Notes: generated by a model not told the origin, from the sequence alone. 64,000 nucleotides of DNA from Macrostomum lignano (GCA_002269645.1 NIVC01001150.1:287698-351697), one strand, 5' to 3'; shown: positions 31,375-62,039, numbered from the stretch's first letter. Numbers and translations are program-made.

Positions 31375-32535
31375 TTGCAGACTCCAGCACCGCAGGGTGG
31401 CTCGGTTATGTCCAAGCCAAAAGATTCGAAGCAGTCGGATACCGGGTCAACCGACACTGCGGTGCAGAGGTCAATATTCGAGGCCGACCTGAAGCAGTTA
31501 GCGCTGCGGCTGATGAGCATGAACACCTCCAGCAGTCACAACCACGTGCAGCTGTCCTCTGCCGAGTGCCTCACCGTCTGCCACTTGGCTGTCGAGAGCA
31601 TGAAAACGAGAGACATCTGCCTTATGCTGCAGTCGCCTCTGAATGTGGTAGCGGATATTCACGGCCAGTTCCATGACCTGCTCCGAATATTTGACTCGCT
31701 CGGCAAGCCACCGGACTCAAAGTACCTGTTTCTCGGAGACTACGTGGACCGAGGCAAGTTCTCGCTGGAAGTGATTATGCTACTGTTTGTGCAGATGCTG
31801 ATGCACCCGAACTCCGTGTTCCTGCTGCGTGGCAACCATGAGACTGCCAGCGTCTGCTGCAGGTATGGCTTCAGAGCGGAAATTCAGCAGCGATTCTCCA
31901 AGATTCAGGCCAACCAGGTGCTTAGCGGCTTCATTCGCGCTTTCCATTGGATGCCGCTCTGCGCGATTGTCGACGGCCGAATCATCTGCTGCCACGGTGG
32001 CCTGTCGCCCTCGATGATGCTCAAGCCGTTCGACACAAATGGCAACCGACAGTTGAACCTGAATGCCCTCAGCAGCCAGCTGCACCGGCCTCTGGAACCC
32101 AAGCGATCGGGCCTGGCCATGGACCTCCTGTGGGCCGACCCGAATCCCGGCTCCACAATGGTCTACTTCAGCAACAGCAACGAGATGAAAGAGGCCAAGT
32201 GGGTGCACAGCGCGCGCCGCCAGTGCTCGTTCCTGTTCTCGGGCGCCGCCTTGCAGCAGGTGCTGCGAATGTTCCGCGTCAAGCTGCTAGTGCGAGGCCA
32301 CCAGATGGCGCAGGCCGGCTTTCGAGTGAGTCTGGATAGGCGCTGCATCACGCTGTTCAGCGCACCCGGCTACTGCGGCATCCAGACCAACAGTGGTGGA
32401 GTGCTGCAGATCATCCAGTCAAGCAAAGAGGCCCGAGAGGCTGGCACCTTCTTTGTGATGAAGCCATCCAAGTGGGAGCAGTCCGATTTGGAGCAGCTGT
32501 TCTGGACCGACATGACTGAAGGCCCTGGCGGATGA
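31375..32535 (+). CDS. Divergent PP1-like Ser/Thr phosphatase (PPP family), intronless, 386 aa
   Basis: ADIHGQ, GDYVDRG, LRGNHE, CCHGG, LLWADP, RGHQ and FSAPGYCG; all metal ligands are present. Confidence 0.93.
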   Translation: MQTPAPQGGSVMSKPKDSKQSDTGSTDTAVQRSIFEADLKQLALRLMSMNTSSSHNHVQLSSAECLTVCHLAVESMKTRDICLMLQSPLNVVADIHGQFHDLLRIFDSLGKPPDSKYLFLGDYVDRGKFSLEVIMLLFVQMLMHPNSVFLLRGNHETASVCCRYGFRAEIQQRFSKIQANQVLSGFIRAFHWMPLCAIVDGRIICCHGGLSPSMMLKPFDTNGNRQLNLNALSSQLHRPLEPKRSGLAMDLLWADPNPGSTMVYFSNSNEMKEAKWVHSARRQCSFLFSGAALQQVLRMFRVKLLVRGHQMAQAGFRVSLDRRCITLFSAPGYCGIQTNSGGVLQIIQSSKEAREAGTFFVMKPSKWEQSDLEQLFWTDMTEGPGG

Positions 32536-39841: not shown

Positions 39842-39920
39842 CCCGTCCGCTTGTGGAAATCGGCCGGATGACTGGCCGCTTGGCTGCATTCGTAGCTGCT
39901 CTGTTTTTTGCTGTGCTTAT

Positions 39921-40400
39921 CCTCCCCGATCGTCTCCGGTCCTCCACGAACTTCTCCAATCCTCCCCGATCGTCTCCGGTCCTCCACGAACTTCTCTAAT
40001 CCTCCCCGATCGTCTCCGGTCCTCCACGAACTTCTCTAATCCTCCCCGATCGTCTCCGGTCCTCCACGAACTTCTCTAATCCTCCCCGATCGTCTCCGGT
40101 CCTCCACGAACTTCTATAATCCTCCCCGATCGTCTCCGGTCCTGCACGAACTTCTCCAATCCTCCTTGATCGTCTCCGGTCCCCCACGAACTTCTCCAAT
40201 CCTCCCCGATAGTCTCCGGTCCTCCACGAACTTCTCCAATCCTCCCCGATCGTCTCCGGTCCTCCACGAACTTCTCCAATCCTCCCTGATCGTCTCCGGT
40301 CCTCCACGAACTTCTCCAATCCTCCCCGATCGTCTCCGGTCCTCCACGAACTTCTCCAATCCTCCCCGATCGTCTCCGGTCCTCCACGAACTTCTCTAAC
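39921..40400. repeat. 40-bp minisatellite, 12 copies
   Basis: Unit CCTCCCCGATCGTCTCCGGTCCTCCACGAACTTCTC(C/T)AAT, strongly pyrimidine-biased, starting 80 bp after the NUBPL stop. Confidence 0.95.
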
Positions 40401-41007: not shown

Positions 41008-44000
41008 AGGGAGCTGCTGTCAAGACTATAACACACGGGCTTTGTCTCCACCAACCCCTGCTCAGTCGGGGGGGGGGGGAGCTGCTGTCAAGACTATAAC
41101 ACACGGGCTTTGTCTCCACCAACCCCTGCTCAGTCGGGGGGGGGGGAGCTGCTGTCAAGACTATAACACACGGGCTTTGTCTCCACCAACCCCTGCTCAG
41201 TCGGGGGGGGGGAGATGCTGTCAAGACTATAACACACGGGCTTTGTCTCCACCAACCCCTGCTCAGTCGGGGGGGGGAGATGCTGTCAAGACTATAACAC
41301 ACGGGCTTTGTCTCCACCAACCCCTGCTCAGTCGGGGGAGATGCTGTCAAGACTATAACACACGGGCTTTGTCTCCACCAACCCCTGCTCAGTCGGGGGG
41401 GGGGAGATGCTGTCAAGACTATAACACACGGGCTTTGTCTCCACCAACCCCTGCTCAGTCGGAGGGGGAGCTGCTGTCAAGACTATAACACACGGGCTTT
41501 GTCTCCACCAACCCCTGCTCAGTCGGGGGGGGGGAGATGCTGTCAAGACTATAACACACGGGCTTTGTCTCCACCAACCCCTGCTCAGTCGGAGGGGGAG
41601 CTGCTGTCAAGACTATAACACACGGGCTTTGTCTCCACCAACCCCTGCTCAGTCGGGGGGGAGATGCTGTCAAGACTATAACACACGGGCTTTGTCTCCA
41701 CCAACCCCTGCTCAGTCGGGGGGGGGAGCTGCTGTCAAGACTATAACACACGGGCTTTGTCTCCACCAACCCCTGCTCAGTCGGGGGGGGAGCTGCTGTC
41801 AAGACTATAACACACGGGCTTTGTCTCCACCAACCCCTGCTCAGTCGGGGGGGGAGCTGCTGTCAAGACTATAACACACGGGCTTTGTCTCCACCAACCC
41901 CTGCTCAGTCGGGGGGGGGAGCTGCTGTCAAGACTATAACACACGGGCTTTGTCTCCACCAACCCCTGCTCAGTCGGGGGGGAGCTGCTGTCAAGACTAT
42001 AACACACGGGCTTTGTCTCCACCAACCCCTGCTCAGTCGGGGGGGGAGCTGCTGTCAAGACTATAACACACGGGCTTTGTCTCCACCAACCCCTGCTCAG
42101 TCGGGGGGGAGCTGCTGTCAAGACTATAACACACGGGCTTTGTCTCCACCAACCCCTGCTCAGTCGGGGGGGGGAGCTGCTGTCAAGACTATAACACACG
42201 GGCTTTGTCTCCACCAACCCCTGCTCAGTCGGGGGGGGAGCTGCTGTCAAGACTATAACACACGGGCTTTGTCTCCACCAACCCCTGCTCAGTCGGGGGG
42301 GGGGGAGCTGCTGTCAAGACTATAACACACGGGCTTTGTCTCCACCAACCCCTGCTCAGTCGGGGGGGGGAGCTGCTGTCAAGACTATAACACACGGGCT
42401 TTGTCTCCACCAACCCCTGCTCAGTCGGGGGGGGGAGCTGCTGTCAAGACTATAACACACGGGCTTTGTCTCCACCAACCCCTGCTCAGTCGGGGGGGGG
42501 GAGCTGCTGTCAAGACTATAACACACGGGCTTTGTCTCCACCAACCCCTGCTCAGTCGGGGGGAGCTGCTGTCAAGACTATAACACACGGGCTTTGTCTC
42601 CACCAACCCCTGCTCAGTCGGGGGGGGGAGCTGCTGTCAAGACTATAACACACGGGCTTTGTCTCCACCAACCCCTGCTCAGTCGGGGGGAGCTGCTGTC
42701 AAGACTATAACACACGGGCTTTGTCTCCACCAACCCCTGCTCAGTCGGGGGGGGAGCTGCTGTCAAGACTATAACACACGGGCTTTGTCTCCACCAACCC
42801 CTGCTCAGTCGGGGGGGGAGCTGCTGTCAAGACTATAACACACGGGCTTTGTCTCCACCAACCCCTGCTCAGTCGGGGGGGGAGCTGCTGTCAAGACTAT
42901 AACACACGGGCTTTGTCTCCACCAACCCCTGCTCAGTCGGGGGGGGAGCTGCTGTCAAGACTATAACACACGGGCTTTGTCTCCACCAACCCCTGCTCAG
43001 TCGGGGGGGGAGCTGCTGTCAAGACTATAACACACGGGCTTTGTCTCCACCAACCCCTGCTCAGTCGGGGGGGAGCTGCTGTCAAGACTATAACACACGG
43101 GCTTTGTCTCCACCAACCCCTGCTCAGTCGGGGGGGGAGCTGCTGTCAAGACTATAACACACGGGCTTTGTCTCCACCAACCCCTGCTCAGTCGGGGGGG
43201 GAGCTGCTGTCAAGACTATAACACACGGGCTTTGTCTCCACCAACCCCTGCTCAGTCGGGGGGGGAGCTGCTGTCAAGACTATAACACACGGGCTTTGTC
43301 TCCACCAACCCCTGCTCAGTCGGGGGGGGAGCTGCTGTCAAGACTATAACACACGGGCTTTGTCTCCACCAACCCCTGCTCAGTCGGGGGGGGAGCTGCT
43401 GTCAAGACTATAACACACGGGCTTTGTCTCCACCAACCCCTGCTCAGTCGGGGGGGGAGCTGCTGTCAAGACTATAACACACGGGCTTTGTCTCCACCAA
43501 CCCCTGCTCAGTCGGGGGGGGAGCTGCTGTCAAGACTATAACACACGGGCTTTGTCTCCACCAACCCCTGCTCAGTCGGGGGGGGAGCTGCTGTCAAGAC
43601 TATAACACACGGGCTTTGTCTCCACCAACCCCTGCTCAGTCGGGGGGGGAGCTGCTGTCAAGACTATAACACACGGGCTTTGTCTCCACCAACCCCTGCT
43701 CAGTCGGGGGGGAGCTGCTGTCAAGACTATAACACACGGGCTTTGTCTCCACCAACCCCTGCTCAGTCGGGGGGGGAGCTGCTGTCAAGACTATAACACA
43801 CGGGCTTTGTCTCCACCAACCCCTGCTCAGTCGGGGGGGGAGCTGCTGTCAAGACTATAACACACGGGCTTTGTCTCCACCAACCCCTGCTCAGTCGGGG
43901 GGGGGAGCTGCTGTCAAGACTATAACACACGGGCTTTGTCTCCACCAACCCCTGCTCAGTCGGGGGGGGAGCTGCTGTCAAGACTATAACACACGGGCTT

Positions 44001-47000
44001 TGTCTCCACCAACCCCTGCTCAGTCGGGGGGGGAGCTGCTGTCAAGACTATAACACACGGGCTTTGTCTCCACCAACCCCTGCTCAGTCGGGGGGGAGCT
44101 GCTGTCAAGACTATAACACACGGGCTTTGTCTCCACCAACCCCTGCTCAGTCGGGGGGGGAGCTGCTGTCAAGACTATAACACACGGGCTTTGTCTCCAC
44201 CAACCCCTGCTCAGTCGGGGGGGAGCTGCTGTCAAGACTATAACACACGGGCTTTGTCTCCACCAACCCCTGCTCAGTCGGGGGGGAGCTGCTGTCAAGA
44301 CTATAACACACGGGCTTTGTCTCCACCAACCCCTGCTCAGTCGGGGGGGGAGCTGCTGTCAAGACTATAACACACGGGCTTTGTCTCCACCAACCCCTGC
44401 TCAGTCGGGGGGGAGCTGCTGTCAAGACTATAACACACGGGCTTTGTCTCCACCAACCCCTGCTCAGTCGGGGGGGAGCTGCTGTCAAGACTATAACACA
44501 CGGGCTTTGTCTCCACCAACCCCTGCTCAGTCGGGGGGGGAGCTGCTGTCAAGACTATAACACACGGGCTTTGTCTCCACCAACCCCTGCTCAGTCGGGG
44601 GGGGAGCTGCTGTCAAGACTATAACACACGGGCTTTGTCTCCACCAACCCCTGCTCAGTCGGGGGGGGAGCTGCTGTCAAGACTATAACACACGGGCTTT
44701 GTCTCCACCAACCCCTGCTCAGTCGGGGGGGGAGCTGCTGTCAAGACTATAACACACGGGCTTTGTCTCCACCAACCCCTGCTCAGTCGGGGGGGAGCTG
44801 CTGTCAAGACTATAACACACGGGCTTTGTCTCCACCAACCCCTGCTCAGTCGGGGGGGGAGCTGCTGTCAAGACTATAACACACGGGCTTTGTCTCCACC
44901 AACCCCTGCTCAGTCGGGGGGGGAGCTGCTGTCAAGACTATAACACACGGGCTTTGTCTCCACCAACCCCTGCTCAGTCGGGGGGGGAGCTGCTGTCAAG
45001 ACTATAACACACGGGCTTTGTCTCCACCAACCCCTGCTCAGTCGGGGGGGGAGCTGCTGTCAAGACTATAACACACGGGCTTTGTCTCCACCAACCCCTG
45101 CTCAGTCGGGGGGGGGAGCTGCTGTCAAGACTATAACACACGGGCTTTGTCTCCACCAACCCCTGCTCAGTCGGGGGGGGAGCTGCTGTCAAGACTATAA
45201 CACACGGGCTTTGTCTCCACCAACCCCTGCTCAGTCGGGGGGGGAGCTGCTGTCAAGACTATAACACACGGGCTTTGTCTCCACCAACCCCTGCTCAGTC
45301 GGGGGGGAGCTGCTGTCAAGACTATAACACACGGGCTTTGTCTCCACCAACCCCTGCTCAGTCGGGGGGGGGAGCTGCTGTCAAGACTATAACACACGGG
45401 CTTTGTCTCCACCAACCCCTGCTCAGTCGGGGGGAGCTGCTGTCAAGACTATAACACACGGGCTTTGTCTCCACCAACCCCTGCTCAGTCGGGGGGGAGC
45501 TGCTGTCAAGACTATAACACACGGGCTTTGTCTCCACCAACCCCTGCTCAGTCGGGGGGGGAGCTGCTGTCAAGACTATAACACACGGGCTTTGTCTCCA
45601 CCAACCCCTGCTCAGTCGGGGGGGAGCTGCTGTCAAGACTATAACACACGGGCTTTGTCTCCACCAACCCCTGCTCAGTCGGGGGGGAGCTGCTGTCAAG
45701 ACTATAACACACGGGCTTTGTCTCCACCAACCCCTGCTCAGTCGGGGGGGAGCTGCTGTCAAGACTATAACACACGGGCTTTGTCTCCACCAACCCCTGC
45801 TCAGTCGGGGGGGGGAGCTGCTGTCAAGACTATAACACACGGGCTTTGTCTCCACCAACCCCTGCTCAGTCGGGGGGGGAGCTGCTGTCAAGACTATAAC
45901 ACACGGGCTTTGTCTCCACCAACCCCTGCTCAGTCGGGGGGGGAGCTGCTGTCAAGACTATAACACACGGGCTTTGTCTCCACCAACCCCTGCTCAGTCG
46001 GGGGGGAGCTGCTGTCAAGACTATAACACACGGGCTTTGTCTCCACCAACCCCTGCTCAGTCGGGGGGGAGCTGCTGTCAAGACTATAACACACGGGCTT
46101 TGTCTCCACCAACCCCTGCTCAGTCGGGGGGGGAGCTGCTGTCAAGACTATAACACACGGGCTTTGTCTCCACCAACCCCTGCTCAGTCGGGGGGGAGCT
46201 GCTGTCAAGACTATAACACACGGGCTTTGTCTCCACCAACCCCTGCTCAGTCGGGGGGGGAGCTGCTGTCAAGACTATAACACACGGGCTTTGTCTCCAC
46301 CAACCCCTGCTCAGTCGGGGGGGAGCTGCTGTCAAGACTATAACACACGGGCTTTGTCTCCACCAACCCCTGCTCAGTCGGGGGGGAGCTGCTGTCAAGA
46401 CTATAACACACGGGCTTTGTCTCCACCAACCCCTGCTCAGTCGGGGGGGAGCTGCTGTCAAGACTATAACACACGGGCTTTGTCTCCACCAACCCCTGCT
46501 CAGTCGGGGGGGGAGCTGCTGTCAAGACTATAACACACGGGCTTTGTCTCCACCAACCCCTGCTCAGTCGGGGGGGGAGCTGCTGTCAAGACTATAACAC
46601 ACGGGCTTTGTCTCCACCAACCCCTGCTCAGTCGGGGGGGAGCTGCTGTCAAGACTATAACACACGGGCTTTGTCTCCACCAACCCCTGCTCAGTCGGGG
46701 GGGAGCTGCTGTCAAGACTATAACACACGGGCTTTGTCTCCACCAACCCCTGCTCAGTCGGGGGGGAGCTGCTGTCAAGACTATAACACACGGGCTTTGT
46801 CTCCACCAACCCCTGCTCAGTCGGGGGGGAGCTGCTGTCAAGACTATAACACACGGGCTTTGTCTCCACCAACCCCTGCTCAGTCGGGGGGGAGCTGCTG
46901 TCAAGACTATAACACACGGGCTTTGTCTCCACCAACCCCTGCTCAGTCGGGGGGGAGCTGCTGTCAAGACTATAACACACGGGCTTTGTCTCCACCAACC

Positions 47001-50000
47001 CCTGCTCAGTCGGGGGGGAGCTGCTGTCAAGACTATAACACACGGGCTTTGTCTCCACCAACCCCTGCTCAGTCGGGGGGGAGCTGCTGTCAAGACTATA
47101 ACACACGGGCTTTGTCTCCACCAACCCCTGCTCAGTCGGGGGGGAGCTGCTGTCAAGACTATAACACACGGGCTTTGTCTCCACCAACCCCTGCTCAGTC
47201 GGGGGGGAGCTGCTGTCAAGACTATAACACACGGGCTTTGTCTCCACCAACCCCTGCTCAGTCGGGGGGGAGCTGCTGTCAAGACTATAACACACGGGCT
47301 TTGTCTCCACCAACCCCTGCTCAGTCGGGGGGGAGCTGCTGTCAAGACTATAACACACGGGCTTTGTCTCCACCAACCCCTGCTCAGTCGGGGGGGAGCT
47401 GCTGTCAAGACTATAACACACGGGCTTTGTCTCCACCAACCCCTGCTCAGTCGGGGGGGAGCTGCTGTCAAGACTATAACACACGGGCTTTGTCTCCACC
47501 AACCCCTGCTCAGTCGGGGGGGGAGCTGCTGTCAAGACTATAACACACGGGCTTTGTCTCCACCAACCCCTGCTCAGTCGGGGGGGGAGCTGCTGTCAAG
47601 ACTATAACACACGGGCTTTGTCTCCACCAACCCCTGCTCAGTCGGGGGGGAGCTGCTGTCAAGACTATAACACACGGGCTTTGTCTCCACCAACCCCTGC
47701 TCAGTCGGGGGGGGAGCTGCTGTCAAGACTATAACACACGGGCTTTGTCTCCACCAACCCCTGCTCAGTCGGGGGGGGAGCTGCTGTCAAGACTATAACA
47801 CACGGGCTTTGTCTCCACCAACCCCTGCTCAGTCGGGGGGGGAGCTGCTGTCAAGACTATAACACACGGGCTTTGTCTCCACCAACCCCTGCTCAGTCGG
47901 GGGGGAGCTGCTGTCAAGACTATAACACACGGGCTTTGTCTCCACCAACCCCTGCTCAGTCGGGGGGGAGCTGCTGTCAAGACTATAACACACGGGCTTT
48001 GTCTCCACCAACCCCTGCTCAGTCGGGGGGGGAGCTGCTGTCAAGACTATAACACACGGGCTTTGTCTCCACCAACCCCTGCTCAGTCGGGGGGGGAGCT
48101 GCTGTCAAGACTATAACACACGGGCTTTGTCTCCACCAACCCCTGCTCAGTCGGGGGGGGAGCTGCTGTCAAGACTATAACACACGGGCTTTGTCTCCAC
48201 CAACCCCTGCTCAGTCGGGGGGGAGCTGCTGTCAAGACTATAACACACGGGCTTTGTCTCCACCAACCCCTGCTCAGTCGGGGGGGAGCTGCTGTCAAGA
48301 CTATAACACACGGGCTTTGTCTCCACCAACCCCTGCTCAGTCGGGGGGGAGCTGCTGTCAAGACTATAACACACGGGCTTTGTCTCCACCAACCCCTGCT
48401 CAGTCGGGGGGGAGCTGCTGTCAAGACTATAACACACGGGCTTTGTCTCCACCAACCCCTGCTCAGTCGGGGGGGAGCTGCTGTCAAGACTATAACACAC
48501 GGGCTTTGTCTCCACCAACCCCTGCTCAGTCGGGGGGGAGCTGCTGTCAAGACTATAACACACGGGCTTTGTCTCCACCAACCCCTGCTCAGTCGGGGGG
48601 GAGCTGCTGTCAAGACTATAACACACGGGCTTTGTCTCCACCAACCCCTGCTCAGTCGGGGGGGAGCTGCTGTCAAGACTATAACACACGGGCTTTGTCT
48701 CCACCAACCCCTGCTCAGTCGGGGGGGAGCTGCTGTCAAGACTATAACACACGGGCTTTGTCTCCACCAACCCCTGCTCAGTCGGGGGGGAGCTGCTGTC
48801 AAGACTATAACACACGGGCTTTGTCTCCACCAACCCCTGCTCAGTCGGGGGGGGAGCTGCTGTCAAGACTATAACACACGGGCTTTGTCTCCACCAACCC
48901 CTGCTCAGTCGGGGGGGGAGCTGCTGTCAAGACTATAACACACGGGCTTTGTCTCCACCAACCCCTGCTCAGTCGGGGGGGGAGCTGCTGTCAAGACTAT
49001 AACACACGGGCTTTGTCTCCACCAACCCCTGCTCAGTCGGGGGGGGAGCTGCTGTCAAGACTATAACACACGGGCTTTGTCTCCACCAACCCCTGCTCAG
49101 TCGGGGGGGGAGCTGCTGTCAAGACTATAACACACGGGCTTTGTCTCCACCAACCCCTGCTCAGTCGGGGGGGGAGCTGCTGTCAAGACTATAACACACG
49201 GGCTTTGTCTCCACCAACCCCTGCTCAGTCGGGGGGGAGCTGCTGTCAAGACTATAACACACGGGCTTTGTCTCCACCAACCCCTGCTCAGTCGGGGGGG
49301 GAGCTGCTGTCAAGACTATAACACACGGGCTTTGTCTCCACCAACCCCTGCTCAGTCGGGGGGGAGCTGCTGTCAAGACTATAACACACGGGCTTTGTCT
49401 CCACCAACCCCTGCTCAGTCGGGGGGGGAGCTGCTGTCAAGACTATAACACACGGGCTTTGTCTCCACCAACCCCTGCTCAGTCGGGGGGGAGCTGCTGT
49501 CAAGACTATAACACACGGGCTTTGTCTCCACCAACCCCTGCTCAGTCGGGGGGGAGCTGCTGTCAAGACTATAACACACGGGCTTTGTCTCCACCAACCC
49601 CTGCTCAGTCGGGGGGGAGCTGCTGTCAAGACTATAACACACGGGCTTTGTCTCCACCAACCCCTGCTCAGTCGGGGGGGAGCTGCTGTCAAGACTATAA
49701 CACACGGGCTTTGTCTCCACCAACCCCTGCTCAGTCGGGGGGGAGCTGCTGTCAAGACTATAACACACGGGCTTTGTCTCCACCAACCCCTGCTCAGTCG
49801 GGGGGGAGCTGCTGTCAAGACTATAACACACGGGCTTTGTCTCCACCAACCCCTGCTCAGTCGGGGGGGAGCTGCTGTCAAGACTATAACACACGGGCTT
49901 TGTCTCCACCAACCCCTGCTCAGTCGGGGGGGAGCTGCTGTCAAGACTATAACACACGGGCTTTGTCTCCACCAACCCCTGCTCAGTCGGGGGGGAGCTG

Positions 50001-52451
50001 CTGTCAAGACTATAACACACGGGCTTTGTCTCCACCAACCCCTGCTCAGTCGGGGGGGAGCTGCTGTCAAGACTATAACACACGGGCTTTGTCTCCACCA
50101 ACCCCTGCTCAGTCGGGGGGGAGCTGCTGTCAAGACTATAACACACGGGCTTTGTCTCCACCAACCCCTGCTCAGTCGGGGGGGGAGCTGCTGTCAAGAC
50201 TATAACACACGGGCTTTGTCTCCACCAACCCCTGCTCAGTCGGGGGGGAGCTGCTGTCAAGACTATAACACACGGGCTTTGTCTCCACCAACCCCTGCTC
50301 AGTCGGGGGGGAGCTGCTGTCAAGACTATAACACACGGGCTTTGTCTCCACCAACCCCTGCTCAGTCGGGGGGGAGCTGCTGTCAAGACTATAACACACG
50401 GGCTTTGTCTCCACCAACCCCTGCTCAGTCGGGGGGAGCTGCTGTCAAGACTATAACACACGGGCTTTGTCTCCACCAACCCCTGCTCAGTCGGGGGGGA
50501 GCTGCTGTCAAGACTATAACACACGGGCTTTGTCTCCACCAACCCCTGCTCAGTCGGGGGGGAGCTGCTGTCAAGACTATAACACACGGGCTTTGTCTCC
50601 ACCAACCCCTGCTCAGTCGGGGGGGAGCTGCTGTCAAGACTATAACACACGGGCTTTGTCTCCACCAACCCCTGCTCAGTCGGGGGGGGAGCTGCTGTCA
50701 AGACTATAACACACGGGCTTTGTCTCCACCAACCCCTGCTCAGTCGGGGGGGAGCTGCTGTCAAGACTATAACACACGGGCTTTGTCTCCACCAACCCCT
50801 GCTCAGTCGGGGGGGAGCTGCTGTCAAGACTATAACACACGGGCTTTGTCTCCACCAACCCCTGCTCAGTCGGGGGGGAGCTGCTGTCAAGACTATAACA
50901 CACGGGCTTTGTCTCCACCAACCCCTGCTCAGTCGGGGGGGAGCTGCTGTCAAGACTATAACACACGGGCTTTGTCTCCACCAACCCCTGCTCAGTCGGG
51001 GGGGAGCTGCTGTCAAGACTATAACACACGGGCTTTGTCTCCACCAACCCCTGCTCAGTCGGGGGGGAGCTGCTGTCAAGACTATAACACACGGGCTTTG
51101 TCTCCACCAACCCCTGCTCAGTCGGAGGGGGAGCTGCTGTCAAGACTATAACACACGGGCTTTGTCTCCACCAACCCCTGCTCAGTCGGGGGGGAGCTGC
51201 TGTCAAGACTATAACACACGGGCTTTGTCTCCACCAACCCCTGCTCAGTCGGGGGGGAGCTGCTGTCAAGACTATAACACACGGGCTTTGTCTCCACCAA
51301 CCCCTGCTCAGTCGGGGGGGAGCTGCTGTCAAGACTATAACACACGGGCTTTGTCTCCACCAACCCCTGCTCAGTCGGGGGGGAGCTGCTGTCAAGACTA
51401 TAACACACGGGCTTTGTCTCCACCAACCCCTGCTCAGTCGGGGGGGAGCTGCTGTCAAGACTATAACACACGGGCTTTGTCTCCACCAACCCCTGCTCAG
51501 TCGGGGGGGAGCTGCTGTCAAGACTATAACACACGGGCTTTGTCTCCACCAACCCCTGCTCAGTCGGGGGGGAGCTGCTGTCAAGACTATAACACACGGG
51601 CTTTGTCTCCACCAACCCCTGCTCAGTCGGGGGGGAGCTGCTGTCAAGACTATAACACACGGGCTTTGTCTCCACCAACCCCTGCTCAGTCGGGGGGGAG
51701 CTGCTGTCAAGACTATAACACACGGGCTTTGTCTCCACCAACCCCTGCTCAGTCGGGGGGGAGCTGCTGTCAAGACTATAACACACGGGCTTTGTCTCCA
51801 CCAACCCCTGCTCAGTCGGGGGGGAGCTGCTGTCAAGACTATAACACACGGGCTTTGTCTCCACCAACCCCTGCTCAGTCGGGGGGGAGCTGCTGTCAAG
51901 ACTATAACACACGGGCTTTGTCTCCACCAACCCCTGCTCAGTCGGGGGGGAGCTGCTGTCAAGACTATAACACACGGGCTTTGTCTCCACCAACCCCTGC
52001 TCAGTCGGGGGGAGCTGCTGTCAAGACTATAACACACGGGCTTTGTCTCCACCAACCCCTGCTCAGTCGGGGGGGAGCTGCTGTCAAGACTATAACACAC
52101 GGGCTTTGTCTCCACCAACCCCTGCTCAGTCGGGGGGGAGCTGCTGTCAAGACTATAACACACGGGCTTTGTCTCCACCAACCCCTGCTCAGTCGGGGGG
52201 GAGCTGCTGTCAAGACTATAACACACGGGCTTTGTCTCCACCAACCCCTGCTCAGTCGGGGGGGAGCTGCTGTCAAGACTATAACACACGGGCTTTGTCT
52301 CCACCAACCCCTGCTCAGTCGGGGGGGAGCTGCTGTCAAGACTATAACACACGGGCTTTGTCTCCACCAACCCCTGCTCAGTCGGGGGGGAGCTGCTGTC
52401 AAGACTATAACACACGGGCTTTGTCTCCACCAACCCCTGCTCAGTCGGGGG
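41008..52451. repeat. ~63-65-bp satellite, left block (~180 units)
   Basis: Unit (G)nAGCTGCTGTCAAGACTATAACACACGGGCTTTGTCTCCACCAACCCCTGCTCAGTC; variation lies almost only in G-run length. Confidence 0.99.
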
Positions 52452-52558
52452 CTGACCTTGACTTAGCTGCAGGGCGGTCCGAAGACGCAGCGGGGAGGCG
52501 AGCGTCGCCCATTCCGCTAATCCCTGAAAGACCCGCATAGGCTAGGGCGCGGGGCCGG

Positions 52559-55500
52559 TCAGGGAGGTCTGCCGGTCCTGTCTGCAGCGTTGTCTTCGGT
52601 GGGGAAGACGGAGGCTCGCTTGGTGGCCCGGAGGAACCGGATGAGCCGTGGGATGTTCTCGGGCCGGCAAACGTCGTCCAGGGACGGGTTGGGCCCGAGG
52701 TGGTTGAGCCGGTCTCGGTTGAAGGCCGGGCAGTAGCAGACGAAGTGCATGGCATCTTCATTCTCGAGGCTGCAGAAGGGGCAGAGTTCACTCCGGCGAA
52801 CACATCGGAGGAAGCAGTGCCTGGCAAAGCAACCGTGACCTGTGAAGGTCATAGTGAGAGCGCGGATATCTTTTCGATTTTGATTCAAAAGGATTCTCCG
52901 CAGCTTGAGGGACGGATTGGGCACTGCCGCACGAGATTGGCGGCAGTTGGAGATACCATCCCATCTGCGCAAGTGCAGGATGTCCGCCCAGTCGTTAATC
53001 TGACGATTAATGACTGTGGCGGGGATGGGGGCCAGGGGCACGGGGCCAAGGGGCGAGCCGGAACAGCCCGCCTTAGCGAGGGAGTCGGCGAGCTCGTTAC
53101 CTTTGAAGCCGGCGTGTCCTGGGATCCACGTGAGCCGGACGGTGTTCCTCCGAGCCAGCTTGTTGAGCTGCCCGATACAGTCGCGGACTGTTCGGGAGTT
53201 CGTAGTGGTGTGACACAGGGCCTGTAAAGCGGCCTGGCTGTCAGAGTGGAAGAAGATTCTTCTGTCCTTGAAGTCCTTGCGGTGGAGCTCAGCTGCACAG
53301 GAGCTGATGGCAAGGACTTCATTCTGGAAGACGCTGGAGAGTCTGCCAGTGTGTTGGGCGTGAGTAGCAATCACGCGGCCGTTGATAAGGATGCAGACTC
53401 CAAAGCCGGATAAACCGTCTTTGGAGGATCCGTCAGTGAAGCAGTGAACCTCCTGAGGGGCCCAGCTGTCGTTGGCGTTCTCCCTGGAGGGGATCGTGAC
53501 CTTGAAGCGTTGGTAGAGGTTGAGGGAGCGCGGTTCAGCGTCCGAAAGGACAGCCGCACTCCCACTCTCCTCCAGAACTTTAAGGCACAGGTCAGAGTGC
53601 GGCAGGAGCTTGCGCTTCGCCATCGCTCTTTGTGGCTTGAAGCTAACACCAGCCTCGATGAGCCGGCGGGTGGTTTTAGCAGCCTCGCGACGGACAAAGA
53701 TGTCCAGAGGCGGGAGGCAGAGAAAGGCGTTGAGGCCGTCAAAGGGAGCAGAGAGCGGGGCATTCAGGATCATGCGGCACGCACGTCCCTGCACCTTTTT
53801 GAGGGCTTCGTGGCAGGTTTTAATCTGCAAGGCGCTGGTCCAGACCAGGCCGGCGTATGTAACGGCCGGTCGGACCATTGCGGTATAGATCCACCAGAGA
53901 CGCTTTGGGGTGAGGCCCCAGGTGGTGCCGACGGCTCTGCGCAGCTGCGCAAGAATCGCGAGGGCTTTTTTGGTTTTGGCCTGGACGTGGGTGGACCAGC
54001 TCAGCCGGTGGTCCAGCGTAACGCCGAGACACTTGGTTTGCTTGCAGGATGGAATTTCCACCCCGTAAAGCTTTAGTGGGCGAATACGCCAGTTTACCCT
54101 GCTGGTGAACATGATCGCGACAGTTTTGGTCTCGGAGAGCCTGAGGCCGCACCTGTCCGCCCAACGTTCAGCAGAGCGAATGAAGTTTTGCAAAAGATCT
54201 CTAAGGGTTTCAGGTGACGGTCCGGATGCCACGGCTGTGACATCATCGGCGTAACCGACCTTGAGGATGGGGTCAAGATGGCTGTCCTGGAGGAGCTCAT
54301 CGATGACCATGTTCCAGAGAACTGGAGAGAGGACACCGCCCTGGGGGCTGCCTTTGCAGACGGTTACCGTCCGTTGGTGGCCCAACAGGTGTGCGGTGGC
54401 AGTACGGTGGCTGATCATATACATGATCCACCGGGTGAGGTGCGAGTGGGTTCCTCTAGCACGTAGAGCTCTGTCAAAGGCCTCAAAGAGGACATTATCG
54501 AAGGCTCCAACAATGTCGAGGAAGACAGCGAGAGCGTAGCCATTACCAAGAACGGCTTTCTCCAGCATGTCAACCAGAACGTGAAGCGCGCTCTCCGTGG
54601 ACCTGCCTGCCCGAAAGGCATGCTGGTTCTCACTGAGCGGCTTGTTCTTCAGTTCCACAGAGAGGAGGCGCCAGAGCACCAGTCTCTCTAACAGCTTCAC
54701 CAATGAGGAGGTGAGGCTAATTGGTCTGAAGGATTTAATGGACCGGTAGTCCGGTCGGCCAGGCTTGGGGATAAAGACCACCTTGGCCTCGGTCCAGGAT
54801 TTCGGAACAAAGCCGAGCACAATGCAGGCTTTCAGAAGCCGGCAAAGGTTCCGCAGGAAACCGGTGCATTTCACCGCCTCCCGCAGGAAGGCTGGCACAA
54901 CGCCGTCCGGTCCTGGGGATTTGAAGGGTTTGAAGGAGGAGACAGCTTTAGTAACGCGGTCCTCCGTGATGATTGAGTCAGCCAGTACGTGTCCGCCCAC
55001 TGAGTGGTCAGGGGGGCCGGGCCTAGCTGGCTCGTTCGGGAAAAACGCTGTTAGCATCGCTTCCAGTGTTTCTCCTGGGTTCTCAGTGAGCGAGCCGTCG
55101 GCTCTCTTGACTGAGGAGAGTTTGGACATTTTGTCCAGGGTGAGGGCTTTAACGATTCTGGAGGTGGGGCGGGAGCCCTCAAGTTCCTCACAGTATTCGC
55201 GCCACTTGTTGGTTTTGGCGTTCCTAACCTGCCTCTTGAACTCGTGGATAGAGTTCAGGTAGGCGGTTTGGTCGGCCGGGTTTTTAGTTTTTTGGGCCCT
55301 GCGGTGAAGCCTTTTGGCTCTGCGACGGAGGTCGCCAAGCTGCGGGTTCCACCATGGGGCCGACTGTTTGCCTTTATATGCCTTTAGTGGGCATGAGGCT
55401 TCGAAGGCAGCAGTGAGCGAGTCCGTAAGTGCGGCCGCAAATTCATCTGCTTCTTCGCAGGTGTTGATGGAGACTGGAGCGCTAGTGCAACGATAGGTCT

Positions 55501-56263
55501 CCTCCAGGGCAAGCCTGAAGGCGGTCCAGTCGGTATTCCTAGCATTCCGTTTCCAGTAAAGCTGGCCTGCGTTACGGGCGCTGGCCAGCGTGAAAGAGAT
55601 GAACTTGTGATCGGAGAGGGACGCCTCAGGAAGCACCCGCCATTCCCTAGTGCTCTGGAAGAGCCTGGGCGTGGCGAGGGTGGCATCCAGCACCTCCGAT
55701 CGGCGTCCGTTATTGAAGGTAGGGGTACTACCCGAGTTACAGAACTCAAGGGTTGTAGTAGCAATATAAGCCAGGAAGTCTTCACCTCTCTGGTTTATAT
55801 CAGAACTGCCCCAGTGGGTGTGGTGGGCATTGATGTCACCTGCCACGAGCAGCTCATAGTTTCTGGTGGAGCAGAGCTCGACCAGTGTGACAAGCTCTAC
55901 TGGGATCATCTCGCCGTCGCCCGGTAGGTAAACCGAGGCGATGAGGGTAGTCCTCCCAGGGAGTATGTCTTCAGACTGGATGACACAGATGTCCCTGGTG
56001 GACAGGTCTGATCTGAGCCATGCGTTAATAGAACTGGACACCATGATGCAGGATCTTGGTGCCAGGTTTCCCTCCCGGGTACCAGCGGTTAAACACTGGT
56101 AGCCGGTGGGGACATGTTGGGGGCTGCCCCTAAGCGTCCAAGGTTCCTGGATAAGGATAATCCCTGGCACGTATTGGTCAGTGTGCTTCAAGAGGTTGAC
56201 TGAAGCAGCAATGCTGTGCTGCAGGTTGACCTGCAAGCAGTGGATGCCCTGGGAGACAGTCAT
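52559..56263 (-). CDS. LINE ORF2: AP endonuclease, RT, RNase H, CCHC finger, 1234 aa, uninterrupted
   Basis: APE: QVNLQH, IQEPW, GDINAHH, LDATL, SDH. RT: FRPISL, FLDIVGAFD, GSPQGGVLSP, YADD. RNase H: FTDGS, E, SDSQ, GNELAD. Finger: CPFC..EDAMHFVCYC. Confidence 0.96.
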   Translation of the reverse strand: MTVSQGIHCLQVNLQHSIAASVNLLKHTDQYVPGIILIQEPWTLRGSPQHVPTGYQCLTAGTREGNLAPRSCIMVSSSINAWLRSDLSTRDICVIQSEDILPGRTTLIASVYLPGDGEMIPVELVTLVELCSTRNYELLVAGDINAHHTHWGSSDINQRGEDFLAYIATTTLEFCNSGSTPTFNNGRRSEVLDATLATPRLFQSTREWRVLPEASLSDHKFISFTLASARNAGQLYWKRNARNTDWTAFRLALEETYRCTSAPVSINTCEEADEFAAALTDSLTAAFEASCPLKAYKGKQSAPWWNPQLGDLRRRAKRLHRRAQKTKNPADQTAYLNSIHEFKRQVRNAKTNKWREYCEELEGSRPTSRIVKALTLDKMSKLSSVKRADGSLTENPGETLEAMLTAFFPNEPARPGPPDHSVGGHVLADSIITEDRVTKAVSSFKPFKSPGPDGVVPAFLREAVKCTGFLRNLCRLLKACIVLGFVPKSWTEAKVVFIPKPGRPDYRSIKSFRPISLTSSLVKLLERLVLWRLLSVELKNKPLSENQHAFRAGRSTESALHVLVDMLEKAVLGNGYALAVFLDIVGAFDNVLFEAFDRALRARGTHSHLTRWIMYMISHRTATAHLLGHQRTVTVCKGSPQGGVLSPVLWNMVIDELLQDSHLDPILKVGYADDVTAVASGPSPETLRDLLQNFIRSAERWADRCGLRLSETKTVAIMFTSRVNWRIRPLKLYGVEIPSCKQTKCLGVTLDHRLSWSTHVQAKTKKALAILAQLRRAVGTTWGLTPKRLWWIYTAMVRPAVTYAGLVWTSALQIKTCHEALKKVQGRACRMILNAPLSAPFDGLNAFLCLPPLDIFVRREAAKTTRRLIEAGVSFKPQRAMAKRKLLPHSDLCLKVLEESGSAAVLSDAEPRSLNLYQRFKVTIPSRENANDSWAPQEVHCFTDGSSKDGLSGFGVCILINGRVIATHAQHTGRLSSVFQNEVLAISSCAAELHRKDFKDRRIFFHSDSQAALQALCHTTTNSRTVRDCIGQLNKLARRNTVRLTWIPGHAGFKGNELADSLAKAGCSGSPLGPVPLAPIPATVINRQINDWADILHLRRWDGISNCRQSRAAVPNPSLKLRRILLNQNRKDIRALTMTFTGHGCFARHCFLRCVRRSELCPFCSLENEDAMHFVCYCPAFNRDRLNHLGPNPSLDDVCRPENIPRLIRFLRATKRASVFPTEDNAADRTGRPP

Positions 56264-56265
56264 GT

Positions 56266-57794
56266 CTACTGTCCAGGGGAGGAGAAAAGCAACTCATTCT
56301 CAGCCTCATCGGTGAGAGTTGAGTCGCCAATTTCCATTGGCTCAGGCTCAGCCGCCTCCCCAGCCGCCGCGGAGGCGGACACGGCGCCCACGGCAGGTGA
56401 GTCACCTAGCCGCGCTACACCGCCCTCCTCCCCAGCGACTGGGGTACGGCTGCTGCCTTCGCCTTGCGCCCCGCCGTCGGGAGTCTGAGCTCGGCCGGCA
56501 GCGTCCTCCTGGTGGTAATCCCACCAGTTGGAAGGCTGAGCCGTGCCGTCGTCCAGTTCCCTCGGCTGGCTTTCAGTGTTTTTTCGAGCGGCACGAGTCT
56601 GCTCGAGGTGAAGTCTCAGAGACTGAGCTTCGTCAAGTGCGCGCTGGATTAGACCGGACCGCCGGCTACTGCGGGCGGGTCTACGTCCGCGCGAGGCGGA
56701 CTCAGCAGCGCGAATAGCCTTGTTAGGCTCGGGATCGGGTTGCTGCTGCCGCTTGGCCGGCGGGGCATGAGCCCCAGCTCCGGGAGCGGCGCGCTTCCCG
56801 TCTTTCTTGGTCTCCACCTTGCCCTCCTCACAGCGGAGGATGGTCAGTTGATGGAGACCAAGGTGGAGGTTTGTGCCGTGCGGTAGCCGCTTGGCCCATC
56901 CCTCCGTCAGGCCGAGGATGACTGTGGCCCCGGTCGTGCCCTTGCGGACCGTGCTGTGGTACACAAGACCACTGGCGTCGAGATCCGGGTGCCGCTTGAG
57001 CAGGAGCTGCCGCAGCTGCTCCCCGGACTTGATTGCACTGTCGGCCGGGACCCAAATCCGATGGCGGATGGTCTTCGGCCGCTCGCTCTCCAAGGCGAAG
57101 GTCAGCTGGCCCAGGTCGCTGTGCCAGTCGAACTTGGGCAGCTGATCCCGCAGGAGCTGGGTGCTCTCCTCGGATTTGCACCACAGTAGGATGCACCCGT
57201 TCGCCTTGGTGGACTTGACGATGTCCACGAAGACGCCCTCCAGGGTTAGATTGAGCAAGCCCTCGTCGATGGTACGCCACGCGACGTCGAGCTGCTCGGG
57301 CGTCAGGTCGAAATCCCCGCCGAGGATCATCACGGCGGGTTGCAGCGGCTGCTTGACCTTGGACGCGTAGGACTCGGAGGTCTTGAGCGGGGCCGCTTTG
57401 TCTTTGGAAGGCGGTAGGCCGGCAGGGTTGCCCCCTGAGAGCCCGAGGACACGGCGGTTCCTGACGGCCCAGCCGCGCCACCGGACTCCCCAGAGGGCCT
57501 CCCCGCTGCGGTGGCTCCCGAAGGCCTCACCGCGGCTTGCGTGCCCTCCTCAGACGCAGCAGCAGCCCGCTTCTCCTGCCGCTTACGGTTGCGGCGGATG
57601 TTCCGCTGTCGTCGAGACTCGGCCGTGCGCGGTCGGCTAGACTGGCGGCCAGGGTGATCGGCGGCAGCGTCAGCTGGCCCGGTTGGACCAGGTTGGGCGT
57701 TGGTGCTACCAGTGGTAGCTACCGGAGCGGCTGATCCCGGTGAGCCAGAGGCGACCGGGTCAGTTTCTTTAGGGATGGTGGCGTTAGTGGCCAT
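56266..57794 (-). CDS. LINE ORF1 (DUF4780-like), split over two frames by a -1 shift near 57430
   Basis: Frame A runs 57794-57330. Frame B is open from ~57550 to 56266 and contains SYASKVK and GCILLWC..HRIWVP..LGL, resembling LOA-type ORF1. No CCHC knuckles. Confidence 0.75.
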
Positions 57795-58284
57795 AGCTGA
57801 AAAGCGGGGGAGGGCTACTCGTTATGCGAGTTGAGTACCCGACTGGCCGACACCTCAAGCCAGCCGGTTTGAAAAAAGGACCGCTAGCGACCGGACTACT
57901 CCCCGGCCTTCCAGCCCATCGGCACGGTCAAACACCTTAGGCATTAGAGGGTACGTTAAGCAGTACCACGGCCTGCAGGCTGGTGAGCCAGACCCGCATA
58001 CCCAAATTCGGCCGAAGCCACTGGATAGGGTCGCCAGCGCCGGAGCCCAGTCTGTCCAGCAGCCCTAGGGTCTGCCTTGAACACACGCGGGGACGAGTAC
58101 CCCTGGGTCGACTTGCGAGACAGCGTGGGGGAGTCTGCGGCTGCCAGAGGCAAATAGAGGGTGCAGACCTCCCACCAGCCTTGACCTGCTGAAGATGGGG
58201 GCAGGCGTGAAGCATCGCAGACCTTAGCTCGTAGGCCTAGTCTGTCTCATACTTCACTGGCATGCTGAATACGCCTTCGCGTGC

Positions 58285-61200
58285 GTCGGGGGGGGGAGCT
58301 GCTGTCAAGACTATAACACACGGGCTTTGTCTCCACCAACCCCTGCTCAGTCGGGGGGGGGAGCTGCTGTCAAGACTATAACACACGGGCTTTGTCTCCA
58401 CCAACCCCTGCTCAGTCGGGGGGGGGGGAGCTGCTGTCAAGACTATAACACACGGGCTTTGTCTCCACCAACCCCTGCTCAGTCGGGGGGGGGGAGCTGC
58501 TGTCAAGACTATAACACACGGGCTTTGTCTCCACCAACCCCTGCTCAGTCGGAGGGGAGCTGCTGTCAAGACTATAACACACGGGCTTTGTCTCCACCAA
58601 CCCCTGCTCAGTCGGGGGGGGGGGGGAGATGCTGTCAAGACTATAACACACGGGCTTTGTCTCCACCAACCCCTGCTCAGTCGGAGGGTGAGCTGCTGTC
58701 AAGACTATAACACACGGGCTTTGTCTCCACCAACCCCTGCTCAGTCGGAGGGGGAGCTGCTGTCAAGACTATAACACACGGGCTTTGTCTCCACCAACCC
58801 CTGCTCAGTCGGGGGGGGGGGGGAGATGCTGTCAAGACTATAACACACGGGCTTTGTCTCCACCAACCCCTGCTCAGTCGGAGGGGGAGCTGCTGTCAAG
58901 ACTATAACACACGGGCTTTGTCTCCACCAACCCCTGCTCAGTCGGAGGGGGAGATGCTGTCAAGACTATAACACACGGGCTTTGTCTCCACCAACCCCTG
59001 CTCAGTCGGAGGGGGAGCTGCTGTCAAGACTATAACACACGGGCTTTGTCTCCACCAACCCCTGCTCAGTCGGGGGGGGGGAGCTGCTGTCAAGACTATA
59101 ACACACGGGCTTTGTCTCCACCAACCCCTGCTCAGTCGGGGGGGGGAGCTGCTGTCAAGACTATAACACACGGGCTTTGTCTCCACCAACCCCTGCTCAG
59201 TCGGGGGGGGGAGCTGCTGTCAAGACTATAACACACGGGCTTTGTCTCCACCAACCCCTGCTCAGTCGGAGGGGGAGCTGCTGTCAAGACTATAACACAC
59301 GGCTTTGTCTCCACCAACCCCTGCTCAGTCGGGGGGGGGAGCTGCTGTCAAGACTATAACACACGGGCTTTGTCTCCACCAACCCCTGCTCAGTCGAAGG
59401 GGAGATGCTGTCAAGACTATAACACACGGGCTTTGTCTCCACCAACCCCTGCTCAGTCGGAGGGGGAGCTGCTGTCAAGACTATAACACACGGGCTTTGT
59501 CTCCACCAACCCCTGCTCAGTCGGGGGGAGCTGCTGTCAAGACTATAACACACGGGCTTTGTCTCCACCAACCCCTGCTCAGTCGGAGGGGAGATGCTGT
59601 CAAGACTATAACACACGGGCTTTGTCTCCACCAACCCCTGCTCAGTCGGAGGGGGAGCTGCTGTCAAGACTATAACACACGGGCTTTGTCTCCACCAACC
59701 CCTGCTCAGTCGGGGGGGGAGCTGCTGTCAAGACTATAACACACGGGCTTTGTCTCCACCAACCCCTGCTCAGTCGGGGGGGGGGGGAGATGCTGTCAAG
59801 ACTATAACACACGGGCTTTGTCTCCACCAACCCCTGCTCAGTCGGGGGGGGAGCTGCTGTCAAGACTATAACACACGGGCTTTGTCTCCACCAACCCCTG
59901 CTCAGTCGGAGGGGGAGATGCTGTCAAGACTATAACACACGGGCTTTGTCTCCACCAACCCCTGCTCAGTCGGAGGGGAGCTGCTGTCAAGACTATAACA
60001 CACGGGCTTTGTCTCCACCAACCCCTGCTCAGTCGGGGGGGGGGAGCTGCTGTCAAGACTATAACACACGGGCTTTGTCTCCACCAACCCCTGCTCAGTC
60101 GGAGGGGGAGATGCTGTCAAGACTATAACACACGGGCTTTGTCTCCACCAACCCTGCTCAGTCGGAGGGGGAGCTGCTGTCAAGACTATAACACACGGGC
60201 TTTGTCTCCACCAACCCCTGCTCAGTCGGGGGGGGGGAGATGCTGTCAAGACTATAACACACGGGCTTTGTCTCCACCAACCCCTGCTCAGTCGGGGGGG
60301 AGCTGCTGTCAAGACTATAACACACGGCTTTGTCTCCACCAACCCCTGCTCAGTCGGAGGGGGAGATGCTGTCAAGACTATAACACACGGGCTTTGTCTC
60401 ACCAACCCCTGCTCAGTCGGAGGGGAGCTGCTGTCAAGACTATAACACACGGGCTTTGTCTCCACCAACCCTGCTCAGTCGGGGGGGGGGGAGGTGCTGT
60501 CAAGACTATAACACACGGGCTTTGTCTCCACCAACCCCTGCTCAGTCGGAGGGGGAGCTGCTGTCAAGACTATAACACACGGGCTTTGTCTCCACCAACC
60601 CCTGCTCAGTCGGGGGGGGGAGCTGCTGTCAAGACTATAACACACGGGCTTTGTCTCCACCAACCCCTGCTCAGTCGAAGGGGAGATGCTGTCAAGACTA
60701 TAACACACGGGCTTTGTCTCCACCAACCCCTGCTCAGTCGGAGGGGAGCTGCTGTCAAGACTATAACACACGGGCTTTGTCTCCACCAACCCCTGCTCAG
60801 TCGGGGGGGGGAGCTGCTGTCAAGACTATAACACACGGGCTTTGTCTCCACCAACCCCTGCTCAGTCGGGGGGGGAGATGCTGTCAAGACTATAACACAC
60901 GGGCTTTGTCTCCACCAACCCCTGCTCAGTCGGAGGGGAGCTGCTGTCAAGACTATAACACACGGGCTTTGTCTCCACCAACCCCTGCTCAGTCGGGGGG
61001 GGGAGCTGCTGTCAAGACTATAACACACGGGCTTTGTCTCCACCAACCCCTGCTCAGTCGGAGGGGAGATGCTGTCAAGACTATAACACACGGGCTTTGT
61101 CTCCACCAACCCCTGCTCAGTCGGAGGGGGAGCTGCTGTCAAGACTATAACACACGGGCTTTGTCTCCACCAACCCCTGCTCAGTCGGAGGGGGAGATGC

Positions 61201-61543
61201 TGTCAAGACTATAACACACGGGCTTTGTCTCCACCAACCCCTGCTCAGTCGGAGGGGGAGCTGCTGTCAAGACTATAACACACGGGCTTTGTCTCCACCA
61301 ACCCCTGCTCAGTCGGAGGGGGAGATGCTGTCAAGACTATAACACACGGGCTTTGTCTCCACCAACCCCTGCTCAGTCGGGGGGGGGGAGCTGCTGTCAA
61401 GACTATAACACACGGGCTTTGTCTCCACCAACCCCTGCTCAGTCGGGGGGGGAGCTGCTGTCAAGACTATAACACACGGGCTTTGTCTCCACCAACCCCT
61501 GCTCAGTCGGGGGGGGGAGCTGCTGTCAAGACTATAACACACG
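58285..61543. repeat. ~63-68-bp satellite, right block (~50 units)
   Basis: Same unit but more heterogeneous: GGAGGGGG, GAAGGGG and GAGATGCTG variants and 1-bp deletions. Confidence 0.99.
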
Positions 61544-61612: not shown

Positions 61613-62039
61613 CTAATCCCTCAGTGCCACTATCTGTGCTAATCCCTCAGTGCCACTATCTGTGCTAATCCCTCAGTGCCACTATCTGTGCTAATCCCTC
61701 AGTGCCACTATCTGCTAATCCCTCAGTGCCACTGTCTGTGCTAATCCCTCAGTGCCACTATCTGCTAATCCTTCAGCGCCACTATCTGTGCTAATCCCTC
61801 AGCGCCACTATCTGTGCTAATCCCTCAGTGCCACTATCTGTCTAATCCTCAGAGCCACTGCCTGTGCTAATTCCTCAGTGCCACTATCTGTGCTAATCCC
61901 TCAGTGCCACTATCTGTGCTAATCCCTCAGCGCCACTATCTGTGCTAATCCCTCAGTGCCACTATCTGTGCTAATCCCTGCAGTGCCACTATCTGTGCTA
62001 ATCCCTCAGTGCCACTATCTGTGCTAATCTCTCAGCGCC
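61613..62039. repeat. 26-bp minisatellite, ~16 copies
   Basis: Unit CTAATCCCTCAGTGCCACTATCTGTG with 24-bp deletion variants. Confidence 0.93.

Follow-up and report, generated by a model that had tools for sequence, protein, structure and literature searches.

A full-length I-group LINE within a 63-bp satellite array of Macrostomum lignano, probably placed there by chance and tolerance and not by dedicated targeting

We analysed a stretch of 64,000 nucleotides from the flatworm Macrostomum lignano (GCA_002269645.1 NIVC01001150.1:287698-351697; the whole stretch is referred to here as the window, with positions counted from its first letter) in which an array of a 63-bp satellite is interrupted by a retrotransposon that lacks long terminal repeats (a non-LTR retrotransposon), that is, a long interspersed nuclear element (LINE). 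A preliminary description of this DNA had raised the possibility that the element is specialised on the satellite as its insertion target. The array is a single tandem repeat split in two by 5.8 kb of non-repetitive DNA with 60% GC, and within this interval long open reading frames (ORFs) are found on the minus strand only. The features of the array and of the element are listed below, including the untranslated regions (UTRs), the apurinic/apyrimidinic endonuclease (APE) and reverse transcriptase (RT) domains and the target site duplication (TSD); L001 and L016 denote contigs that carry relatives of the element.

41009-52451, left part of the satellite array (Tandem Repeats Finder, TRF: 63-bp unit x180, 98% matches)
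52444-52451, plus strand, TSD copy at the 3' end of the element, GTCGGGGG
52452-58284, minus strand, full-length non-LTR retrotransposon of 5,833 bp, 60% GC (from the junctions; termini match the L001 and L016 contig ends)
52452-52558, minus strand, 3' UTR of 107 nt without poly(A)
52559-56263, minus strand, ORF2 of 1234 aa, open, with intact catalytic motifs
52730-52783, minus strand, C-terminal Cys/His motif CPFCSLENEDAMHFVCYC, ORF2 residues 1161-1178 (regular expression on the ORF2 translation)
53063-53455, minus strand, RNase H, ORF2 residues 937-1067 (Pfam RNase_H, 1.9e-12)
54014-54772, minus strand, RT, ORF2 residues 498-750 (Pfam RVT_1, 2.3e-34), with YADD at 54242-54253
55586-56239, minus strand, APE-type endonuclease, ORF2 residues 9-226 (Pfam Exo_endo_phos_2, 2.8e-20, and Exo_endo_phos)
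56266-57794, minus strand, ORF1 of ~509 codons with a broken frame
56791-57378, minus strand, central domain of ORF1, related to DUF4780 (hhalign, AlphaFold, Foldseek)
57795-58284, minus strand, 5' UTR of 490 nt, of which the first ~80 nt are conserved with L001
58285-58292, plus strand, TSD copy at the 5' end of the element, GTCGGGGG
58285-61543, right part of the satellite array (TRF 58292-61543: 64-bp unit x50.5, 95% matches, ~50 monomers)

The two copies of GTCGGGGG are identical over their 8 bp and the phase of the monomers is continuous across the element, the plus strand reading ...CTCAGTCGGGGG/CTGACCTTGACTTAGCTGCAG at the left junction and ...CGCGTGC/GTCGGGGGGGGGAGCTG at the right (the slash marks the boundary). 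As the motif is present at both junctions the element proper can be delimited to 52452-58284, and as GTC precedes the right-hand G-run the satellite sequence has truly been duplicated and not merely split. The 8 bp are an upper estimate of the length of the TSD since the G-run itself differs in length from monomer to monomer. On the sense strand the element finishes ...CCCTGCAGCTAAGTCAAGGTCAG with CCCCCGAC directly after it, and poly(A) is absent. Both termini are confirmed by the contig ends of two independent relatives: the L001 contig (Logan, ORF2 60% identical) starts at the position homologous to 58284, and the L016 contig (Logan, 44% identical) ends ...CCCTGCAGATAAGTCAAGTCAA, which is the same terminal motif as in the window element. 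No repeat of element sequence was found elsewhere in the window. The preliminary description had the element lying antisense within the array, with a length of about 5.8 kb and with a satellite motif duplicated in the G-run at both junctions, all of which agrees with the minus-strand position between the two TRF array parts, the measured 5,833 bp and the two copies of GTCGGGGG.

The 56-bp monomer body of the satellite is essentially invariant, with monomer typing assigning one type to 169 of 173 units on the left and to 14 of 34 on the right, and the variation lies entirely in the G-run, where 1-13 G are found between monomers along with GGAGGGG and GAGATG variants. The left array is almost perfectly homogeneous with G-runs mostly of 7-8 G, whereas the right part is more mixed, runs of 9-13 G alternating with interrupted GTCGGAGGGG or GAGATG variants in units of ~127-130 bp, so that two homogenisation domains meet at the LINE. 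The three monomers directly to the right of the LINE are of the left-part type. Satellite and element are without a match to any Rfam family and no tRNA is present in the window, so that the satellite does not look derived from an RNA gene. No description of the 63-bp satellite or of M. lignano LINEs was found in the literature searched. The DV1 line of the worm has roughly three paralogous copies of the genome (PMC10733133).

ORF2 contains the catalytic motifs IQEP, GDINA, SDH, FLDI, QGGVLSP, YADD and TDGS, and its C-terminal Cys/His motif follows the pattern CPFC...H...C. An N-terminal APE domain followed by an RT with YADD, a short TSD and the lack of LTRs are the characteristics of a LINE. 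In comparison with solved structures the APE domain was closest to the TRAS1 endonuclease (3e-11) and then to the R1Bm endonuclease (2e-3), with the L1 endonuclease unmatched. The I group of LINEs is made up of Ingi, I, Nimb, Loa, R1, Tad1 and Loner as well as Outcast, with RNase H downstream of the RT, and R1 is among the I-group clades with reported RNase H (PMC4640811). Because the APE domain of the window element matches the TRAS1 and R1Bm endonucleases and not that of L1, and because its RNase H lies downstream of the RT, the predicted protein supports membership of the I group within the APE-type non-LTR retrotransposons. The APE-RT-RNase H architecture given in the preliminary description is borne out by Pfam matches to all three domains in addition to the catalytic motifs, as is its placement of the element at the level of the group. 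The element represents a new LINE family of a known type, the I group, that had not been described before and has a flatworm as its host.

The same description had called the element intact, which is true of ORF2 and not of ORF1, where one G is missing and the frame is shifted. ORF1 ends in a TAG stop (56266-56268) located 2 nt upstream of the ORF2 ATG and is split into 57330-57794 and 56266-57444, one base pair having been lost from a G-run at ~57434-57438, where the window has GGGGG in place of the GGGGGG implied by a second M. lignano copy, the UniProt model P0003, which reads through ...SGSQGGNPAGLPPSK... at this point. The frameshift may be a real inactivating mutation or a homopolymer error of long-read assembly. 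ORF1 had also been described as DUF4780-like and here the outcome depends on the method. No Pfam match was obtained for ORF1 of the window family or of L001 even at E<=10, both remaining below the DUF4780 (PF16012) gathering threshold of 24.5 bits, and a BLASTP comparison with an insect DUF4780 protein did not reach significance. Homology was however detected by profile-profile comparison: a profile built from six sequences of the ORF1 central domain was compared by hhalign with the DUF4780 segments of two arthropod LINE proteins, P0054 and P0062, and aligned to them at 96.7% probability with E 4e-10 over 145 columns. The AlphaFold model of the central domain (mean pLDDT 80.7) contains two beta-alpha-beta-beta-alpha-beta units like those of the RNA recognition motif (RRM), and the top Foldseek matches are the tandem-RRM proteins IMP3, U2AF65 and HuR (E 1e-4 to 3e-3), with global TM-scores that are low (0.29-0.36), as expected if the angle between the domains differs. 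The fold predicted for this domain resembles a tandem RRM. There are 3 Cys in the 500 aa of ORF1 and a search for the motif CX2CX4HX4C found no CCHC knuckle in it.

With respect to the tail, the preliminary description was right that poly(A) is lacking, but the 3' end is not without features of its own. The 3' UTR closes with a motif, CCCTGCAG(C/A)TAAGTCAA, that is conserved in the window element, L001 and L016 at amino-acid identities of 44-60%, and the last bases resemble a degenerate two-copy short repeat (GTCAAG GTCAG in the window, GTCAAGTCAA in L016). In an alignment of the same three sequences analysed with alifold a stem-loop is conserved in which 6 pairs carry double changes, while the thermodynamics of the fold are not significant (minimum free energy z = -0.46); the compensatory changes, seen in three sequences only, are suggestive of a structured 3' UTR. 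The type of tail varies within the lineage, since the more distant relative L020 ends in (ACAAT)4 at ~6196-6216 followed by the unrelated flank GTTGAAG and L017 (42% identical) ends in poly(A)14 at 4222-4236 followed by CCCCCTCC. The start of the L017 contig (1-95) also carries a 27-bp x3.5 repeat and the 3' region of L018 (4843-5121) a 67-bp x2.9 hairpin-containing repeat and then a 24-bp GC-rich repeat.

At the other end of the element, alignment of the 5' UTR with L001 (1-547) shows GC..GC.A.GGC in common, followed at nt 33-78 by a block of strong conservation; stretches such as GTATGAGA...GCTAAGGTCT.CGATGC are shared although the ORF2 identity between the two families is only 60%. This degree of nucleotide conservation suggests a functional element at the start of the 5' UTR, for example a promoter or an RNA structure. 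R2, Baggins, RTE and other LINEs carry a 5' ribozyme like that of hepatitis delta virus (HDV), a nested double pseudoknot that begins at the first nucleotide. No Rfam match to such a ribozyme was found in the element at E<=1, and a crude, loose HDV descriptor, which gives a weak negative, had no match at the 5' terminus, nor any shared by corresponding positions of the window element and L001.

Searching with ORF2 returned ten M. lignano UniProt models at 51-100% identity as well as Logan and metagenome contigs at 29-60%, and from the ten models we take the M. lignano genome to hold at least 8 diverged lineages of this LINE group. All of the M. lignano matches are chimeric gene models in which pieces of LINE are joined to host genes. 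P0003 matches the window element at 98-100% protein identity over its LINE-derived portions, and at ORF2 codon 1217 the model crosses to the 5' exons of an NDR-type kinase, a gene not present in the 64-kb window. The sister lineages beyond this near-identical copy are 51-75% identical, and the LINE-fused models join leucine-rich repeat (P0007 and P0011), ankyrin/integrase (P0009), SAM/WD40 (P0010), neuropeptide precursor (P0012), fibrinogen-domain (P0015) and subtilase (P0035) sequences. Residues 1-185 of P0012 comprise a signal peptide and many GYARFGKR repeats and have the look of an RFamide-type neuropeptide precursor. No 7-mer derived from the satellite in any frame was found in the M. lignano chimeric models, P0003 included.

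Relatives for which DNA was available are L001, L016, L017, L018, L019, L020 and L021. Among close relatives a 3' flank is available only for L001, which is 60% identical and shares the UTR motifs, and this flank consists of 520 bp of non-repetitive DNA. As these relatives are other families from other organisms their DNA does not test the specificity of the window family. Neither the window ORF2 nor P0003 had an exact entry in an assembly index, a composite of three junction-spanning and satellite-encoded peptides had no match at E<=0.001 among 5.8 billion proteins, and the exact 3' end and satellite core gave 0 matches in GTDB genomes and IMG/VR. Fourteen JGI metagenome loci with the conserved 3' end CTGCAGCTAAGTCAARGT were rejected as chance matches, being without ORF2 homology.

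Among known systems the closest parallels for targeted insertion are found in the R1 clade, with R1Bm in 28S ribosomal DNA (rDNA), TRAS1 and SART1 in telomeric repeats and Waldo and Mino in microsatellites. The window element resembles these in the affinity of its APE domain to the TRAS1 and R1Bm endonucleases, in its two ORFs, in its defined short duplication and in its insertion within a tandemly repeated target. Classical R1-clade ORF1 proteins carry CCHC zinc knuckles. The window element differs from the clade in lacking these knuckles, in that any specificity is putative, there being one insertion, and in that its target would be a complex 63-bp satellite and not an RNA gene, a telomeric repeat or a microsatellite. 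It shares the APE-RT-RNase H order of ORF2 with LOA elements (LOA, Bilbo, Lian and Baggins) and with I, Nimb, Ingi, Tad1 and Outcast, and is again unlike LOA and the other I-group clades with RNase H in the absence of CCHC knuckles from its ORF1. LOA and these other clades are generally dispersed and not site-specific, which fits an untargeted insertion in the window, and the LOA clade is known mainly from insects where the host here is a flatworm. The arthropod LINEs P0054 (Linepithema humile) and P0062 (Nesidiocoris tenuis), in which DUF4780 is part of the polyprotein or of ORF1, are 35-37% identical in ORF2 and their ORF1 central domain is homologous by the profile-profile comparison, but the flatworm ORF1 falls below the Pfam DUF4780 threshold and both insect models come from automated gene prediction. 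The YURE/Utopia elements, which are occasionally inserted in the U2_sat satellite derived from U2 small nuclear RNA, set a precedent for non-LTR retrotransposons with a satellite among their preferred targets (Kojima and Jurka 2015, PMC4640811). Those elements differ in having a restriction-like endonuclease and a satellite derived from an RNA gene, where the element described here is of APE type and its satellite is without an Rfam or tRNA match.

Insertion would have taken place by target-primed reverse transcription into one 63-bp monomer. A first-strand nick on the plus strand of the window after the fifth G (GTCGGGGG^GGGG) would have been followed by reverse transcription from the conserved 3' end of the element itself, recognition of which would depend on the 3' UTR in place of poly(A). 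The 8-bp duplication would result from a second nick, at GAC^TGA on the element sense strand and at a distance of 8 bp from the first. The pattern of the 3' UTR fits LINEs of the 'stringent' kind, in which the 3' end of the element is recognised by the RT that it encodes. The explanation that we favour, and regard as probable, is that this is a young full-length copy of an I-group LINE whose location in the satellite reflects chance together with tolerance of insertions in non-coding tandem DNA. Signs of recent activity are the intact ORF2 and the second copy that is 98-100% identical in protein sequence. A dedicated mechanism of satellite recognition is most likely absent, although we infer this absence of targeting from several indirect lines. 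Only 1 of ~230 monomers is occupied and the 14.7 kb of array contain no truncated copies or other element fragments; rDNA or telomere specialists typically show dense occupancy of their target, unlike the array in the window. Simple and tandem repeats amount to 15% of the M. lignano genome (PMC5730564), so that at least one of ~11 random insertions would be expected to fall in tandem DNA (P ~0.83). Insertions in tandem DNA are also likely to be retained more often. The position within the monomer is without statistical weight as the G-run takes up ~1/8 of it and there is one insertion only. Taken together the indirect evidence leans against strict satellite specificity, and the caveat in the preliminary description that one insertion cannot prove specificity continues to apply to this single insertion in the array.

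It is unlikely in our assessment that the family is a true specialist with the G-run of the 63-bp satellite as its preferred or exclusive insertion site and with an APE domain that recognises the monomer, a reading under which read-through transcripts ending ...GGUCAG-CCCCCGACUGAGC would anneal to the nicked G-run in the manner described for R1Bm and R2. A number of observations nevertheless fit a target-specific element and weigh against chance placement, namely the clean and precise 8-bp duplication at a defined monomer position, the lack of poly(A), an APE domain whose nearest matches are the sequence-specific endonucleases of TRAS1 and R1Bm, and a conserved 3' UTR structure, as is typical where a LINE recognises its own 3' end. 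To these can be added that the flanks of the family are known from one copy, the window insertion, that the P0003 gene model could splice across a satellite array and that copies embedded in satellites would be under-represented in older assemblies, short-read contigs and gene models, with a bias towards a 'dispersed' picture; as satellite copies escape gene models and short-read contigs, absence from protein collections is uninformative. What speaks against specialisation is that the array holds so few insertions, that the near-identical copy P0003 lies beside a kinase gene and contains no satellite peptide, that L001, the closest relative with a flank, sits in non-repetitive DNA, that L017 carries poly(A) and L020 an unrelated flank after its (ACAAT)4, that the sister lineages are dispersed beside many genes and that the G-run position had a prior chance of ~1/8 in a genome of which 15% is tandem DNA.

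Somewhat more plausible than a satellite specialist, though still doubtful and at most a weak effect, is a loose preference in which the endonuclease nicks at the 3' side of G-runs, or in which G-runs are fragile or structured, so that DNA rich in such runs is hit more often. On the sense strand a C5 run comes directly after both the window element and L017, which also counts against purely random placement; the nick would lie after GGGGG in the window and, from the poly(A) of L017 and the CCCCCTCC after it, after GGGGG of the primed strand there as well, and the G-run is the sole hypervariable part of the monomer and recurs once every 63 bp. This coincidence is a weak hint of some nick-site preference. 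It comprises two cases only and is not shared by L001, whose junction has at most CC, or by L020 with its GTTGAAG flank, and a duplication flanking L017 that might confirm its boundary was looked for and none was found. An assembly artefact, either a chimeric join that placed the element in the array or a collapse of the array around it, is very improbable. Long homogeneous arrays are error-prone, the fluctuation between 7 and 8 G could in part be due to homopolymer errors and the ORF1 frameshift also lies within a homopolymer, but the exact 8-bp duplication and the continuous monomer phase argue for real retrotransposition and against a misjoin. We therefore retain the young I-group copy in tolerant tandem DNA as the preferred reading.

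The remainder of the window contains a number of ORFs and further tandem arrays in the neighbourhood of the satellite.

11056-11348, (CAGT)73 array
13266-14050, 32-bp x24.6 array, just upstream of the TIR-domain ORF
14620-16950, plus strand, 776-aa ORF (TIR domain, BTK zinc motif)
14625-15027, 45-bp x9 repeat, overlapped by the 5' part of the TIR-domain ORF
20363-21646, minus strand, ORF with BIR and RING domains (IAP-like)
25366-28737, minus strand, 1123-aa ORF, pol of a Ty3/gypsy-type LTR retrotransposon (RVT_1, RT_RNaseH, Integrase_H2C2)
31375-32535, plus strand, calcineurin-like metallophosphatase ORF
39919-40396, array of a 40-bp unit x12
61613-62039, array of a 26-bp unit x16.6, beginning ~70 bp past the right end of the 63-bp satellite

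With the IAP-like and metallophosphatase ORFs in the same window, the surroundings of the satellite contain genes and are no gene desert. The window is very rich in tandem DNA, in agreement with the genome-wide figure of 15%.

As it stands, the analysis provides a well-delimited and apparently recently active I-group LINE of the regeneration model M. lignano, together with a conserved 3' end motif and a link, based on a predicted structure, between the orphan Pfam family DUF4780 and a tandem RRM-like fold. APE-type site-specific LINEs are of wider interest as natural models for programmable gene insertion at safe harbours. Should the family prove to be a true specialist it would provide the first demonstration, for an APE-type LINE, of a complex non-genic satellite as a dedicated safe harbour, and would add both a new class of target and a new host phylum to the few APE-type LINEs that are site-specific.

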